Source: Iphione sp. A-MEVVRFRX5 (lineage: Eukaryota). From it: 64,000 bases of DNA. Each line of letters starts with the position of its first letter. The stretch's first letter is position 1. The notes under the pieces are model-generated. The model did no database searches. It worked only from the letters and a program-made list of their open reading frames with translations, and was not told where the DNA came from. The stretch is taken from NCBI GenBank assembly GCA_976226885.1, contig OZ320315.1, forward strand, positions 35,402,001-35,466,000, given 5' to 3'. A program made the position numbers and the translations under genes. Below are positions 4,211 through 61,687 of this stretch, in pieces.

Positions 4211-4346
4211 NNNNNNNNNNNNNNNNNNNNNNNNNNNNNNNNNNNNNNNNNNNNNNNNNNNNNNNNNNNNNNNNNNNNNNNNNNNNNNNNNNNNNNNNNN
4301 NNNNNNNNNNNNNNNNNNNNNNNNNNNNNNNNNNNNNNNNNNNNNN
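4211..4346. other. Assembly gap
   Basis: N run. Confidence 0.98.
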
Positions 4347-53515: not shown

Positions 53516-55843
53516 GTAAATATTTAATTATTTATCGCACTTCAGAATTATTTATTAGGATTGTATCATCATCCATGTGATAGTTGTTTATGTGATTAGC
53601 ACAGGTCATTTAGTTTTGCAGTGCTTAAGAAACAGCAACCTGCTGGTTAACCACACCGCAGCCATAACAGGGAAGCTAGCGTGGTTGTTGATTGTGTTTT
53701 GTTACTGAATACACGATCTGAACAGCTGAAATCCAGGGTGAATCAGTCCCCATAAGCGAAAAGTGGACGTTGGGTATCCGTCCTAGGGAGTTTTCCTCCT
53801 TCTCTAATATAAATAACCATGATACATGTATCTTCTTTTGTGGTAAGCTAAATGGGACAAAGCGTCCGATATTCTGTCCAGGAGTGACCCAGATTTTCGG
53901 CGCAGTCAGAGTGACCTTGCACTTGGGCAAGCCATGCTCATGGCCACTTGCCAGGATTTTCTGAACCGCCCAATCATCGCCAGTGTATGTAATCCATTTT
54001 CTGTAAGCCATGTAGATTATGCATTACCAGCTTACGGTCTGGTACTAGTAAAGCAGAAGTAAACAAAGGCACGTGTTTTCCAAGTGTCGCTGACACTCAT
54101 TAGGCCGGTTGTGTATTGTGTTGTCATTGGTATGGTTCACTTATTACGGTATATGTATGATGATTGTGTTTACAGATTTAAGAATTTGTATGAATATTAT
54201 GACGGCGCCAGACACTATATGAGTGGTTCCTCTATTTCACTATGATATAACTCATGAGTCAACTCACTGAATCTCAGTCGATTTGTCATTATGGGAGGTA
54301 CGGGGTAGCAATGTCACGTTTCTAACTAGGACATACTTGGTACAGTGCAGTTGTTAGAACCGGCAGACAGAGGTTGAAATTAAGGTGTGTGTGTGTGAAT
54401 TTCCATTTACTTGCATTATCTTCACTGCCATAGCTTGTCCTTGCATCTATGATGCATTGTTGCACTTGCAACTTTTTTTCAAGCAGTCTGACTGCAGCTG
54501 CAGTGTTTACACAATGACAGTCCTCCAGCGTCGTAATTTTCTTTCAACCAGCACTCTCTGTCAAGGATACGAAGGGCACAAAGATTTACCCACCCAAGTG
54601 AATAATAACACAATTAAAGAATCGTTCTCTGTCAAGACGCACCGGAAAATAACGGTGTGTTACATCCAAATATTTGGCCAGTGTTCTTCACATTGAGAAC
54701 ATAGTTTAGGCGGCCTAGCACACATATTCCGTAATAGTAAGCTAGCTATACATGTATTTCTCTCTCTATTGCATAAAGTGAAAGGAAGCATACTTTTTGA
54801 GGTAATTCGGTTGCGTTATCTTAGGTAATTTCGTCGTGATTGCTATCTGCTGCTTTATCTTGATAAACCAATTAGTGTGCATCCCGTATTACGCATCGGT
54901 AAGTTATCTCTTACTTTGTGCCTTAGGGATAAAGTTGATGAGAGTAAATTTTGATGCAGTTAAGTTATAGTGTGTAGCATAGAGTACATTGGAATACATT
55001 AGAATGCATATCTGAGGGTATTAGGGTTGGTTTTCAAAGTTGCATTAGTGTGTTGTGCATGGTGTATAAAGTTGGATGGTTTCCATACATGTTTGATGCA
55101 TTGTTATTGTGCTGTTCATTTTCAGACAGTTCTCATAAATTTCATTTTTTTTTTTTTGCGTAAATATAATTACATGCTAAATTTCATGCTAATGTCCAAG
55201 TAGGGTATGAGACTGGGACCTGGGGTCGGGTTTTCAACGTGAGATCCATGAATGAAATAGGTTTAATCAATGAAGATGAAGATGGGGTTCTGGTCCCTGT
55301 TGGTGCTACCTTGAAACTGAAGCTGTAGGCTTCTACACCACTTATAATTTATTTCAAAATAAAAAAAAACGAAATAGGTTTAGTTTGCATATGATTAACA
55401 TAAAAGCCGCACAGTTGCAAAAATGCTCAGCTTCAGGACATTTATGGAAATAATTCAAGACATTTGGGGGAGGGGAATGTACATTTGGCACAAATGCTGA
55501 AAGATTCATGATATTTCACAGTATGGGCTCTATTCCTACCATAAAACTGTAATAGGAATTAGTGCGGCGCAGGTAGAATGACATCCCTATATGCTCCTGT
55601 GCATCATTGCGACCACACTGACCATGCAACTGGAACTCATAACACCCATACTCATGAATAGGAGTGCATATTTATAAACTAGTATGATAATATAAGGAGG
55701 ATGTTGTAAATATCAACCTGTTGTAATAACTGATTTTGGCTTTATTATACGTGGGGCAACAATCATTTGGATCCCACAGATGTCAATTGTATTGAATTGA
55801 TGGATCAGTGTATCTTACGTGTGTGACTTCTATTTGTTTCCAG

Positions 55844-55859
55844 AAATATGCCCCGGAAA
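55844..55859 (+). CDS. LBR: LBR start micro-exon, 16 nt (AAAT ATG CCC CGG AAA = MPRK)
   Basis: TTTGTTTCCAG acceptor and GTAAGT donor; phase 0 fits the next exon; resembles the vertebrate LBR start MPSRK. Confidence 0.72.
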
Positions 55860-58800
55860 GTAAGTAGCTTTTTACTCTCATAAATTTTTGTAGGTTACCG
55901 ATAGTTCCAAAGGAAAAAAATAACTAATTATGAAAGTATAGATGTGTCCACAAATTTCTTTGCCTTGATGATTTTGTTCTCATTTTTTATGAAATTAAAC
56001 CCTGTATTACACTGTTATGCAGTCTGCGGTCATTGTGAAAGTGGATATGTTTGGAGTTTAACAGACAGGTCCAGGGGACCAGTGAGATGTAAACAAAGTT
56101 CAAAAAGCCCCATACATGTATGAGTAAAGTACATGTAGTAAGAACTATAAGATACACATCTTTAGGGTGTTATCCATGTTGTTTCAGTGGCATATGTGAC
56201 CTGTTAGTGAAAAATACCACAAAGGGTTCATTATAGGATTAAATTTGATAATGGTCCAAAAAGAGGGAAAGGGGACTTCCTTTCATCTTTTCTTGTCTTG
56301 AGTAGCTTCTTCTCTGTTGGTAGGAAACGAAAAGCGGTTCTAAAACCGCGTCGAGGCGGTCGCGCTCGCGATCCCGCTCGCGATCGCGATCCAGGAGTCG
56401 CGGTCGCTCCAAATCTCCCGCTCGGACAAAGTCGAAGGCCAGTACTTCCTCCTCCACGCCGTCCCAGACTCGACAGCGGCGAGCTCCATCTCCGACCCTC
56501 ACCAAAACGCCGACGACGCCGACGAGGGTGTCGGCGAGAATAGCTGAAAAGGAGCTGCAGAAAGCAGAGGTGGGTCCTGTCTTCCTGGTCGAGGAGCATG
56601 GTTTTGTCTGTCAGCATTTCTTGGCCCGCTGGGGGGTGGGGGGGTGTTGCCTTTTTCAGAATCATGTTCTCTCATTCTGCCCCGCACAAGTGTATTTTAC
56701 GTCGAAGTGAACCGAAGAGCAGTATTTAATGCCATTGGTTCCTCCCTTCTTTGCAGTATTCCCGATACCCTCCCCCCTTCATTTTTCTCGATAAAGGTGC
56801 AATGATTCTTCAGCGTTAGATATATAAAAAACACATTAGCCCGTTTTGTTAGTTTTTTCCGATAGCCATTTATAATCATGAAATTCTCCTGGATTTCTTA
56901 GCATTTCGTATCATTTTTTCAGGAGGAGAAAAGAATACAAGAGGAAACGAAGGAGGTGAAGAAAGAAACGGTTGTTCAAGAAAAAACTGAAGTGAGGACA
57001 AAAGTTGTCAAGCCCCACAAAAATGATGTGAAGTTTGCCCATGGTATCCTGGGTCCACTACTGGCCACACTTGGCATACCCTGCTTCCCTGCCACTGCCA
57101 TGGCTTTCTACTGGATCTGCACCAAGGTATGTGCACTTCATATATGTTGGCGTCTGTTCCTGTAAGGGGGTTATTGGTTGGGGGTGCCCATGTCATTTGA
57201 AGTGTTGAGATAATTCCTATTTCGTGTGAATTTGTTAAATTTTTTTTAATATATATTTTCCGTGGTCCTGCAGTTATTCATTATCTTCTTACAGGCATCA
57301 TGCACAGTCAAGTCTGTGCCAGTGCTGCCAACTGGACTAGCTTCATACTTCACCCTACAGTCATTTGGAATTGCTCTTGGGTTCGTGGCAGTACAAGCAG
57401 CTCTGGCTGCCGTGCCCGTTGGTCGTCTTGTTGAGGGCCATCCAAATGCAAGGGGACAAAGACTTTTCTACCGGTGCAATAGTGAGTGTGTTTATTTTTT
57501 TATTTTTTTTCAGGGGTTTTATCCTCCCCGCGGACATTTTTTTTCTGGGCATCAAGTAATAAAAGAAGATATTAAATACATGAGGTTTGTGGAAATGTAT
57601 CTTCCTATAAAGCTGATGGTGCTCATATCCCGGATTTTTCATGTGATCGAGGACATTTATTGATGAACTGATTTAATGATACTGTATACTGCGACCTTCT
57701 GACTACTGGTTGTGCATAATTTCAAAGTTGTGCTAATATAATTGATCCTCTTTGCAGTGTTCTTCTCACTTATCGTCACCCTTGCTGCACTCACTCTGAG
57801 TTCCTACCGGAACGTGTCCTTCTCAGCTGTTCTGAACGATCGCATTCCCCTGATGGTGGCATTCTCAATCATAGCGTTTTTCTTGAGTGTCTTCTGTTAT
57901 GTAAAAGCGAAAAGGGCCCCTACTGGTGCATTGTCTCCTGAGGGTCAGACAGGTGAGTAGTCATATTAAAAGATTTTGAGTGATAAATGTCACATGTTTG
58001 TAGCTAGAATAAAACATTCTATTACCTAATCACCTCAATATTTTAGACTTCTGGCACCATTTTTTCATTTTCAATTTACATATTCGATGTTTGTATTAAA
58101 AACAAAATGCAGTGTCCTTCATTTTCCTCTCAGCATGCTTGTTCTTCCTGTTCTCTTCAGGTTGCATACCATACGATTTTTGGCTTGGTCGAGAGCTGAA
58201 CACACGTGTTGGCTCATTTGATATGAAGATGTTCTTCATGCAAACTACCATGGTGGGCTGGGCTGCCGTTAATGCTATGCAGATTGCGGAGGCCTACAAG
58301 CGCAGTGGTCAAGTAGATGCCGCGCTTGCTACTGTGACTGCGCTCCAGCTCCTCCAGATTGCTGACGTTTGTTGGTTCCAGGTGTGTTTACTTCACACTT
58401 TCTTCTGTATGTGTGTCACTGAGTTGGTGGGTTGCCCACGACTAATGTATAAAATGAATGAATATATGTGTGCATGTACTTGTATAACAAGGCGCAGACA
58501 TTTTGGAATGCTTAGTTACAAATTGTCAGGCTGACTCTGCCCTTTTTTTCATGTATTGTCTTAGGTTTTAACCCCATCTTAGCTTGCCAGGCATAGAGGA
58601 TTGTGCTGATGCAGCTAATAGATAGCTGTGGGTAGCTGGGCTGGGTCTTTGATGACGGGGGGTGGGGTTGGGGGTCTCTGATGGCTGGAAGTCGCCGTAG
58701 AGCGTATGTAGTTGCCATGCTATATGCAAAGAGGATTGTGAGCTCCCTGGGTATTGTTGAAGTCAGCAGAAGGTGGGACAAGACTTCAGGGGAGAGGATT

Positions 58801-61687
58801 GGGGGCGAACTGAACTTAATGACAGCAAAGGTTTTTTTTTAGGGGGGGAGGGCATTGGAAGTTTTGATTGACAGTACTTATTGGTACAGCTTGAGAACGT
58901 TTTCAATGCAACCAGGAGAATTACCTGCAACCACTTATTGTTGGCGAGCAACGGTCAACTGTACATGTGTAAACTACATCTAAACGCATGTAGATATGTC
59001 CCATCAATACTAAAGAGCAGACCTGTATGGTGGAACCTCAGCAATAGCCATCGAAGTGGCTACAATAGCCTGTCCACTGAGTATTTTCAAATGTCAACCC
59101 TGGAAGTTACCCTCGCGTTTCCAGTGTTGTCTGAATGATTTCACATGAGCTGTGGGGATGCCGCTAGTTTTATATGTATTACATAAGAGCTGTGGCCGAC
59201 TTAACTCATTGCAGTGACTGTCTGATAAGCCCATCCAGAAGCTAGTCCTTCATTATTTTAAGGATTTAAACCGCTCACTGGCCCCGATTGCTCTGTTCCA
59301 CTGTACTGCTGGTGTCTATATTACTCTGTACTGAAAATGGCTGGACCACAGAGTGAGGCAACCATATTGCTGATGTATTTGTGTATTAGATTCTAGCTGT
59401 AAGTCATCTGTTCCAAGCAAAGTTGACTGTACTCACCCATCAAACATACTTTTGAGTTGATGACACCGCTAGGTTTCTCTATACTTCATATGGTCACTAT
59501 TACATGGATGAATTTTTGTTTGTAAGTATCTCCTTCTTTGCAGTGAGATGTGTAGATTTGATTTATGTATGAAGTAAAGTACTCCAACAATCCTCTTTCA
59601 GAAAGCCACTCTGTCCTCGTTTGACGTCCAAAATGAAGGATGTGGATTCATGATGTCAGCCGGTGCACTGGTGTGGTTACCATTCACATATAGTTTCCAG
59701 ACATACTTCCTGGCTACCCATCCGCGGACTTGGAGCTATGCCTCACTCGCTGCCTTCTGTGTTCTCGGCCGTGAGTTTTCATCTTGGTTTCTCTCCACGG
59801 TCTCATTGCCAAATGCCGAAAAACCCTATATTAGGTTGAACAGGGGGAAAGCTAAGTTTGGTCTCCGTTACAGTATAATGGCATATGATTTTTAAGAGCC
59901 CAGACATTAATGTATTAATGTAACCTTGTATTGTATTTTTTTGGCTACACCTTGATTCAGGTAGGTCAGATTTCTGTAGGTGAAGGATAATTATGTCCCC
60001 CGGCTCAGGGCATGATCACCAAGACAAGGACTTAGTCTAGCAAAATTTGTATGTTTTCCTACTTTAATTGTATATATTCTTTTTACATACTTCAAATATA
60101 ATGCTATGGTATCTCTAATATATCACTTTTTTTGATTATTTACCACAATATTTTCTCTTTTAACACCTTGGTTTACAAATTTTGTTTCCTCTATATATAC
60201 ATTTATTCGGTACATAATACTGCTACTCAAATGCGCTTACAATAATTTTATGATACCGTCAGGAGTTGGAAATTTAATCCATAGGTATTGGTGTAGTTAA
60301 ATTACCAATTAGAAAAAAAATAACAGGGCTCTTTGATTCTCTCACTCTTTGAGGTATTGTGTGAAAGCTAGTAAAATCCCATTTATTTATTTATTTTTTA
60401 AATAATGGAATGCTGCGGTTAAAATGTGAACAAAGCTTTCAAGACATACAAGCTCCTTCAGTGCATGCATTGGTTGTTTGCAGTGGACTGGATGATTTTT
60501 TTCTCTCCACAGTTGTGAATGGTCATTACACCTCGCTGAACACGTAGCATATTGATGCATACTCTTGCACTCTTGCTAAAAATCTGCCGTGTGCCACTGA
60601 ACTGCTTTTATTGGTTATGATGTGACCATAGATGCCTGACATCAAATGACTGTTGTCAGTTTAAAAGATAATTGAGGTTATAAAAAATGAAGAAACCTTT
60701 TATCGTTATATTAAGATAGTGCCCTATGGTTACGTAGAATGTGTATTTTGTGTTTTTTTTTTCTTCCAGTTGTTGGTTATGTCATTTTCCGTGGCTCGAA
60801 CTCACAGAAAGATCAGTTCAGAAGGAACCCATTTGACCCAGCTTTATCCCGTAAGTCTTTATCATTTTGCATCGGTAAAGAATCCTTGATTCATATAACT
60901 TGGCACCAGGGTGTGCTTTTTCAACTGGTCTTCAGGTTTGATAACAACAAAGTAATATGCCAAAGCTCGGCTTTTCATGATTAAGCTCTTACTTGTAACA
61001 TTTAACCTAACATTCGGTGGAAGTAGGGCCTTACAGGAATTTTGTTTGGGCTCACACAGTAACCTACCACCATTATGCCAGGCTGCTTCTAGTGTTCTGT
61101 AATCTTTTATTTCAAGATTTGAAGACGATCCCTTCACCATCTGGCAAAAAACTGCTGGTATCCGGTTGGTGGGGCCTGGTCCGCCACCCCAACTACTTGG
61201 GCGACATCTTGATGAACTTTGCTTGGACATTTCCCTGTGGTAAGTAGCCGGGCATGTTTCAGCTTCACAATACAAATGTATCTTCCAGAACATCTTTAAT
61301 GAGTCAGCTGCAAGTATTGGTACCTTTATCTGCCGATTTACCCACGCCTGTGGTTACTGCAGTGAACCTTGGTGAATTTCTATGGTTGACATATATAAAG
61401 ATAATTCTGTACTTTAGTAGTAACTAATGTCCATTGCAGTTAATCTTAATATTCAAAGGTTTTAGGTTTAATAATTTACGCTGTGTGTCATAGTTTGTGG
61501 AAGGAAAATACCCTTTTCTGCTGCAGGCTTCCAGCACTTCCTCCCATACGTGATCCCGTTGTTCGTCACACTGTTTCTTGTTCACCGTGCCCAGAAGGAT
61601 GATGTTCTTTGTCGTGGCAAGCATGGTGCTGCCTGGGATCGCTACTGCCAGCATGTGCGCTTCAAGATCGTCCCTTATGTCTTTTAA
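55848..61687 (+). CDS. LBR: Lamin B receptor-like / ERG4-ERG24 sterol reductase family protein, 532 aa; exons 55848-55859, 56324-56569, 56923-57126, 57295-57481, 57758-57952, 58161-58381, 59602-59770, 60770-60850, 61117-61239, 61527-61687
   Basis: Exons total 1599 nt, in frame, all GT-AG. RS-rich N-terminus ([24 protein letters not shown]) precedes family motifs [71 protein letters not shown] domain plus C14-reductase-type body points to LBR rather than DHCR7. The first 12-nt coding exon is the least certain. Confidence 0.92.
56324..56569 (+). CDS. LBR: LBR exon, RS domain ([19 protein letters not shown]...KELQKAE)
   Basis: TAG/GTGGGT, 246 nt; not in the ORF track in this frame. Confidence 0.88.
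56923..57126 (+). CDS. LBR: LBR exon, linker and first TM segment
   Basis: TTTTTCAG/GTATGT, 204 nt, phase 0/0. Confidence 0.9.
57295..57481 (+). CDS. LBR: LBR exon (ASCTVKSVP...RLFYRCN)
   Basis: TTACAG/GTGAGT, 187 nt, phase 0/1. Confidence 0.92.
57758..57952 (+). CDS. LBR: LBR exon (MFFSLIV...SPEGQT)
   Basis: TTGCAG/GTGAGT, 195 nt, phase 1/1. Confidence 0.92.
58161..58381 (+). CDS. LBR: LBR exon ([14 protein letters not shown]...DVCWFQ)
   Basis: CTTCAG/GTGTGT, 221 nt, phase 1/0. Confidence 0.94.
59602..59770 (+). CDS. LBR: LBR exon ([17 protein letters not shown]...CVLG)
   Basis: TTTCAG/GTGAGT, 169 nt, phase 0/1. Confidence 0.94.
60770..60850 (+). CDS. LBR: LBR exon ([27 protein letters not shown])
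   Basis: TTCCAG/GTAAGT, 81 nt, phase 1/1. Confidence 0.95.
61117..61239 (+). CDS. LBR: LBR exon ([30 protein letters not shown]...FPC)
   Basis: TTCAAG/GTAAGT, 123 nt, phase 1/1; sterol reductase signature. Confidence 0.96.
61527..61687 (+). CDS. LBR: LBR last coding exon (GFQHFLPY...KIVPYVF-TAA)
   Basis: CTGCAG acceptor, stop at 61685-61687; hand-translated. Confidence 0.95.

Follow-up and report, generated by a model that had tools for sequence, protein, structure and literature searches.

The window analysed here is a 64,000-nucleotide (64-kb) stretch of the genome of Iphione sp. A-MEVVRFRX5 (contig OZ320315.1, positions 35,402,001 to 35,466,000 of the forward strand). At 55848-61687 on the plus strand it carries one intact, apparently functional gene for an invertebrate LBR/TM7SF2-type protein, made up of nine exons and a probable start mini-exon, in which the main NADPH-site motifs of the family are canonical and the predicted catalytic tyrosine of the sterol pocket is replaced. 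The gene model was built from the DNA using AG/GT joins and the open frame, tblastn with relatives, and Pfam. Joined, the nine exons form a 1587-nucleotide open frame with no internal stops, closed by a TAA at 61685-61687, and all AG/GT borders are canonical. Residues are numbered on the 528-amino-acid model, which excludes the MPRK of the mini-exon. The exons are as follows, TM denoting a transmembrane segment.

55844-55859 (+): probable start mini-exon of 16 nucleotides, aaat followed by ATG CCC CGG AAA (MPRK), with the putative ATG at 55848
56324-56569 (+): basic nucleoplasmic segment rich in RS and TP, its (RS)n run beginning near residue 11, which aligns with the RS regions of Octopus P0056, the transcript P0010 and newt LBR
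56923-57126 (+): charged linker and first TM, with a hydrophobic stretch at residues 123-147; AG/GT borders and open frame
57295-57481 (+): TM2 and the following loop (VPVGRLVEG...YRCN); Pfam ERG4_ERG24 positions 64-117, and tblastn with relatives
57758-57952 (+): TM3-TM4; Pfam positions 111-180 (a weak match), tblastn and splice borders
58161-58381 (+): exon with GRELN, the altered ELRPG, the lost Tyr and the lost Glu; Pfam E = 1.7e-13, and PDB alignments
59602-59770 (+): TM7-region exon (SSFDV...); Pfam E = 4.2e-11, and PDB alignments
60770-60850 (+): first NADPH-site motif, canonical; Pfam, with 0 of 9 conserved columns changed
61117-61239 (+): exon with the N547 and D551 equivalents (motif at 61185-61205), both residues kept; Asp codon 61203-61205
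61527-61687 (+): last exon, with the HR Arg (R583 equivalent, 61586-61588), GKHG, W..YC and the stop; Pfam E = 1.8e-15, and PDB alignments

A preliminary description of this DNA had recognised an LBR-like protein at 58161-61687. That interval does contain real coding exons, five in number, but they make up only the C-terminal half of a larger gene. No second gene copy or alternative exon was found in the 64-kb window by tblastn with six relatives on both strands.

Because an in-frame stop lies directly upstream of 56324, the start codon must be sought in an upstream exon. The mini-exon at 55844-55859 is our pick of five ATG-plus-donor candidates in 44000-56323: a tttccag acceptor stands before it and a perfect GTAAGT donor after it, and its MPRK resembles the MPTK/MPPK N-termini of the nearest relatives, the Logan transcripts P0211 and P0010. 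If correctly placed, it implies at least one further 5' untranslated exon upstream, although none was found upstream of 55844.

The LBR-type identity proposed in the preliminary description is borne out by the ERG4/ERG24 domain, with matches in both Pfam and the PDB. Every exon from 57295 on matches Pfam ERG4_ERG24 (PF01222), between them spanning the 432-position profile from position 64 to its end; taken singly, each of the last five exons reaches 27.7-57.1 bits (cut-off 27 bits), over positions 184-432. The best PDB matches of the exons are two solved Δ14-sterol reductases, 9l5r and 4quv (MaSR1), with which they align across TM5-TM10 (E 1e-5 to 1e-8, HMMER). At least seven strongly hydrophobic stretches stand at the expected places by Kyte-Doolittle hydropathy, pointing to a multi-pass membrane architecture, while the N-terminal 115 amino acids are (RS)n and TP-rich, with an isoelectric point of 11.6 and a content of 67% S/R/T/K/P. 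A Tudor domain (PF09465) was found neither by Pfam on the upstream open reading frames nor by tblastn of three Tudor domains against the whole window. Of the features of an LBR in the strict sense, the RS-rich segment ahead of the first TM is therefore present and the N-terminal Tudor domain absent.

The sterol pocket and the cofactor site

Conserved columns were counted in a 231-member family alignment, and a smaller alignment of 39 members was also used. The human LBR motifs and numbering used in the preliminary description match those of 615-amino-acid ape and monkey LBRs: KYFCELRPGLIGW, QLLYVVDALWNEE (Y430) and FGDLVW (D460), with HPNYLGD (N547, D551) and HR (R583) also correctly placed. 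All the substitutions listed there are present in both alignments, and the same differences appear in direct alignments to 4quv and 9l5r. Four of the altered sites can be given by codon.

58238-58249 (+): MQTT replacing (E)LRPG, codons ATG CAA ACT ACC, the KYFCELRPGLIGW region being one residue shorter
58355-58357 (+): Gln (codon CAG) at the predicted catalytic Tyr position, equivalent to MaSR1 Y241, yeast ERG24 Y257 and ape LBR Y430
58379-58381 (+): Gln (codon CAG) replacing the first Glu of W-x-E-E, a Glu in 230 of 231 sequences
59665-59667 (+): Ala (codon GCA) replacing the GD Asp (ape LBR D460, yeast D287), so that FGDLVW becomes AGALVW

The ELRPG columns are strongly conserved among the 231 sequences (Arg in 224, Pro in 210, Gly in 217). 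No other frame near 58220-58260 encodes ELRPG, and the change is therefore divergence and not a local frameshift. At the predicted catalytic position 205 sequences carry Tyr, 23 Trp, two Phe and one Cys, and the Iphione Gln is unique. The alignments place no Tyr there, as the preliminary description had proposed, and confirm the Gln codon at 58355-58357; since MaSR1 ...FQSFYLID, ending at residue 244, aligns to Iphione LQLLQIAD in the QLLYVVDALWNEE region, MaSR1 Tyr241 corresponds to the Iphione Gln. The loss of this key Tyr is genuine and of consequence. The GD column is more variable (Asp in 198, Asn in 17), with GN in Mucor and GL in Radiomyces, and four residues after the GD Asp the Iphione protein has Leu for Val (yeast V291). 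Further on, PYFY..YF has become PYVIPLFV and KKYG has become GKHG. KHG is also found in Aplysia and Octopus, and the KYG-to-KHG change carries little weight.

The roles of these residues are known in part. Yeast ERG24 Tyr257 (MaSR1 Tyr241) and Asp374 (MaSR1 Asp363, the Asp of NYLGD) are predicted catalytic residues, with which the HR Arg is listed elsewhere in the same study, and modelling led to the proposal that the Tyr hydroxyl protonates the Δ14 bond, possibly via water (PMC12489058, 2025). N547 and R583 of LBR (MaSR1 N359 and R395) belong to the NADPH pocket, and mutating them lowers NADPH affinity and abolishes the rescue of cholesterol synthesis (PMC4951196). Yeast D287, the GD Asp, and V291 are amine-resistance positions of ERG24 that tolerate change; the D287N mutant is viable, and Mucoromycota naturally carry Asn (PMC12489058). 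We checked the assignment of the GD Asp to yeast Asp287 through Val291, which four residues on is Leu in MaSR1 both in that study and in our alignment to 4quv. The preliminary description had grouped the Tyr with the GD Asp and the HR Arg in one catalytic network. The pairing of Tyr with HR Arg agrees with the published prediction (PMC12489058), but the GD Asp was rejected as a catalytic residue on the viability of the yeast mutant. A bacterial 8,14-sterol reductase reported in 2026 was set aside as irrelevant, being an NTF2-fold protein.

In the cofactor site, FRGxNSQKxxFR, HR, the RD Asp, the KYG Lys and W..YC are canonical, and 14 of the 15 signature positions from FRG to KYG equal the consensus. 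The equivalents of N547, D551 and R583 are all kept, so that the predicted catalytic Asp of NYLGD (61203-61205) and the Arg of HR (61586-61588) are both present; the family alignments thus agree with the preliminary description on the retained NADPH motifs, on these three residues and on W..YC.

The difference between the two regions can be expressed exon by exon as the identity of the Iphione protein to twelve canonical animal enzymes divided by the identity among those enzymes.

58161-58381 (+): identity ratio 0.59
59602-59770 (+): identity ratio 0.62
60770-60850 (+): identity ratio 1.04
61117-61239 (+): identity ratio 0.93
61527-61684 (+): identity ratio 0.74

By these ratios the protein combines accelerated divergence of the pocket with retained fold signatures, a feature of a catalytically inactive LBR of the Drosophila type. 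A matching profile is found in the LBRs of Octopus, Tachypleus and Anabrus.

Relatives, placement and the rest of the window

An exhaustive search of representative sequences with the peptide of the 58163-58381 exon returned 183 proteins at E <= 0.001, the best of them 38-45% identical. Over the full length, identity is about 40% to lophotrochozoan proteins (Lingula, Batillaria, Patella, Mactra, Lineus, Octopus). Searches seeded with Octopus P0056 and the Logan transcript P0211 found nothing closer than about 40-45% identity, and the exon peptide had no match in a metagenome scan. The top match of the exhaustive search, P0001, is a 1068-amino-acid model in which the same LBR segment is repeated several times alongside an insert unrelated to it; this is apparently an arthropod-type LBR that was mis-assembled or mis-predicted, and not a real architecture.

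A quick maximum-likelihood tree places the Iphione protein within the protostome clade (support 98 by the Shimodaira-Hasegawa-like approximate likelihood ratio test, SH-aLRT), on a terminal branch of 1.29 against a median of 0.36, about 3.5 times as long. It is weakly joined (82-84) to the transcripts P0211 and P0010, and long-branch effects are possible. These two transcripts (loci L001, SRR14325533, and L002, SRR30674219) themselves have a degenerate ELRPG, namely MRVG with the same one-residue gap, and EVHFG; they carry GM/GN for GD and keep the Tyr and the Glu.

Scored at 25 signature positions, 116 of 232 sequences show no deviation and the Iphione protein shows 6. The gastropod, bivalve, Lingula, nemertean, echinoderm, Priapulus and vertebrate proteins are canonical. 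Higher counts are found in the LBRs of Octopus (7, with NFRMS for ELRPG, GN for GD, and KKHG), the cricket Anabrus (8, with the Tyr kept), the fluke Paragonimus (11, with Trp at the Tyr position) and the horseshoe crab Tachypleus (12, with Phe at the Tyr and Ala at the Glu), as well as in a lamprey LBR-like paralog (12), whose NADPH motif has decayed to HPELLGE. The Iphione pattern is thus not very unusual, decay being comparable or stronger in the octopus, horseshoe crab, cricket and fluke LBRs. Its particularity is to combine a unique Gln at the Tyr position and the loss of a Glu that 230 of the 231 sequences have with an NADPH half that is canonical almost throughout. Cephalopods and flatworms, like arthropods, are sterol auxotrophs.

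Two vertebrate groups deserve mention in their own right. In the lampreys Petromyzon and Lethenteron (P0025, P0164-P0166) the LBR-like protein has a Tudor-type N-terminus and an NADPH motif decayed to SWGRLRHPELLGE, and keeps ELRPG and the Tyr, a mosaic opposite to that of Iphione. The otophysan LBRs (zebrafish, carps, catfishes and characins; P0291, P0247, P0251, P0363, P0329, P0367, P0231, P0226) have Trp for the predicted catalytic Tyr (QLLWVxDG) and GLWG for GWWG, while the Betta and Scleropages LBRs and carp TM7SF2 keep the Tyr, which suggests that otophysan LBR may have lost Δ14 reduction too.

Upstream in the window lies a PRY/SPRY (B30.2) gene at 36137-43958 (+), with the PRY in the open reading frame 36137-36709 and the SPRY in 43617-43955 (Pfam E = 7e-14); we presume that it resembles the C-terminal SPRY of the FSD1/MID type. 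The intron between its two exons holds a 126-bp satellite at 37581-42935 (about 42.6 copies, 87% matches), and the long minus-strand open reading frames at 37950-42269 are translations of this satellite and were rejected as genes. Three N runs, 461 bases in total, lie at 4211-4346, 15114-15250 and 28145-28332, none of them near the LBR gene; the third adjoins a (TCTC)n microsatellite at 27882-28143. Neither Rfam nor tRNA scanning gave a match anywhere in the window.

What the altered pocket may mean

We lean towards the explanation that this is an LBR that no longer performs Δ14 reduction and survives for the sake of a role at the nuclear envelope, as has been suggested for Drosophila LBR, perhaps with NADPH still bound. 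The protein would fold, and its RS domain and the first of its transmembrane segments would anchor it in the inner nuclear membrane; NADPH binding may persist, while the canonical Tyr/Asp/Arg reduction of C14-unsaturated sterols would be lost. The gene would then be retained for a non-enzymatic nuclear-envelope or chromatin-tethering role, such as that described for Drosophila LBR, and the animal would take dietary sterols or use another reductase. Drosophila LBR (CG17952) binds lamin and does not complement yeast erg24 (PMC2478713), a result that supports the statement of the preliminary description that this protein has no C14-reductase activity. The interpretation offered in that description is reasonable and finds partial support, while the intermediate state that it also raised, in a lineage with reduced sterol synthesis, is conjectural. 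Arthropods are sterol auxotrophs (PMC2478713, PMC11591786).

Several observations weigh against this explanation or qualify it. The preliminary description had set kept NADPH motifs against a rewired pocket; the principal motifs are indeed canonical and the TM5-7 pocket is altered, but the NADPH half is not untouched, several of its conserved Tyr being Phe, Ile or His. In the last exon 8 of 24 conserved columns are changed, mostly in this way, and across the domain six conserved Tyr have lost the hydroxyl. By count the excess of changed columns in the pocket exons is only modest: at 85% conservation 19 of 50 columns are changed in the two pocket exons and 11 of 53 in the three C-terminal exons (p = 0.08), and at 93% conservation 5 of 27 and 3 of 31, respectively (p = 0.45). 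The contrast is nevertheless real, mainly in the kind of change, and is not to be overstated. Pocket-exon changes run from Arg, Tyr or Glu to Gln, from Pro or Gly to Thr, and from Asp or Phe to Ala; in the C-terminal exons the changes Tyr to Phe, Arg to Lys and Thr to Ser predominate. Nor is the change of Asp460 to Ala by itself evidence of inactivity, because substitution of this Asp is tolerated in yeast and natural in Mucoromycota. We found no mutational test of the catalytic Tyr in the literature, where its role comes from models and docking. Finally, full retention of the NADPH motifs would exceed the need of a pure scaffold and favours some cofactor-dependent role, since the same motifs have decayed in the lamprey LBR-like paralog.

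Other explanations fit parts of these data. It is possible, if doubtful, that the gene is a diverged paralog beside a canonical C14-reductase elsewhere in the genome, as vertebrate LBR stands beside TM7SF2, an arrangement compatible with the other readings. A degenerate LBR-like copy does exist in lamprey, otophysan LBR carries Trp at the Tyr position while TM7SF2 keeps Tyr, and the long branch and weak placement of the Iphione protein would suit such a paralog. However, the match lists contain one LBR/TM7SF2-type protein family per sampled protostome species, and the 64-kb window has no second copy.

We think it unlikely that the protein is still a working Δ14-sterol reductase, in which water or a different side chain would supply the proton and the changes to Gln would retune the pocket without abolishing it. 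The main NADPH motifs and the predicted catalytic Asp and Arg are all present, the GD Asp and the Val four residues on tolerate substitution in yeast, and in the literature consulted the part played by the Tyr is a prediction. Against this, the Tyr position is aromatic in 230 of 231 relatives, with Tyr in 205, and three further near-invariant pocket residues are changed (the Arg and the Pro/Gly of ELRPG, and the Glu). The same exons, moreover, decay in the LBRs of arthropods and a fluke, lineages known as sterol auxotrophs.

A re-specified NADPH-dependent enzyme acting on another lipid, or an NADPH- or redox-sensing membrane protein of the nuclear envelope, is distinctly unlikely in our view, even though it would account for the state of the NADPH exons. 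Two of these are conserved as among active enzymes (ratios 1.04 and 0.93) despite the very long branch, unlike the lamprey LBR-like paralog, which has lost the motif, and the replacements of R, Y and E by Q are polar and not random in kind. Yet HPNYLGD and HR survive in the LBRs of insects and horseshoe crabs too, and Drosophila LBR has no reported enzymatic role, so that motif retention may reflect folding or stability; and we know of no candidate substrate. It seems to us a long shot that this LBR still binds the cofactor and has had its pocket remodelled, with Arg, Tyr and Glu all turned to Gln, for a non-sterol lipid or for coupling NADPH/NADP+ status to nuclear-envelope function. If true, this would explain enzyme-level conservation of the NADPH motifs along a very long branch.

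We give almost no credence to the idea that the gene is a pseudogene in decay, or an artefact of assembly or translation: changes at conserved residues are numerous, but the nine exons run through 1587 nucleotides with canonical splice sites and without stops or frameshifts, conserved motifs flank each changed one in the same frame, the canonical motifs occur in no other frame, and the N runs lie tens of kb away, and on the open frame and the flanking motifs we rejected a frameshift or assembly error.

If confirmed, an LBR dead for Δ14 reduction would make Iphione a further animal lineage that keeps an LBR/C14-reductase gene after loss of the catalytic tyrosine. It would be a clean case, with the proton donor and its neighbours gone and the cofactor site almost untouched, and it would bear on the long-standing question of which part, beyond cholesterol synthesis, the sterol-reductase fold plays at the nuclear envelope. 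The Gln/Tyr difference would also offer a natural test of the Tyr as proton donor, so far a modelling prediction in the literature consulted. Taken alone, this is the expected kind of finding for a sterol-auxotrophic invertebrate, and what is new is most likely the addition of another LBR to the catalytically degenerate invertebrate LBRs already known.

Comparison with known systems

The closest named relatives, at 38-45% identity, are the lophotrochozoan proteins annotated as 'delta(14)-sterol reductase TM7SF2-like' (Lingula, Patella, Batillaria, Lineus, Octopus). The Iphione protein and its molluscan, brachiopod and nemertean orthologs, which have no PF09465, share a Tudor-less, RS-rich architecture. 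Unlike Iphione, the gastropod, bivalve, brachiopod and nemertean proteins have fully canonical signatures, while Octopus combines a degenerate ELRPG and GN with a retained Tyr and Glu.

To vertebrate LBR and TM7SF2 the protein is about 35-36% identical, and it shares with them the domain, exon-level collinearity, the RS-rich N-terminal segment and the equivalents of N547, D551 and R583. It differs from vertebrate LBR in having no Tudor domain and in the replacement of Tyr430 by Gln, ELRPG by MQTT, Glu by Gln and Asp460 by Ala. The structurally characterised enzymes MaSR1 (4quv) and 9l5r both carry E-x-RPG, the Tyr, GD and KYG, whereas the Iphione protein has none of the four.

Among arthropods, the Anabrus and Tachypleus LBRs share with the Iphione protein a decayed pocket and the retained HPNYLGD and HR. 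Anabrus keeps the Tyr where Iphione has Gln, however, the Iphione NADPH half is nearer the consensus, and by the tree the protein is not an arthropod ortholog. Drosophila LBR resembles it as an invertebrate LBR in which a charged N-terminal part precedes the ERG4/ERG24 domain in the membrane; by the published account (PMC2478713) it retains the sterol-reductase fold in a sterol auxotroph and has no C14-reductase activity.

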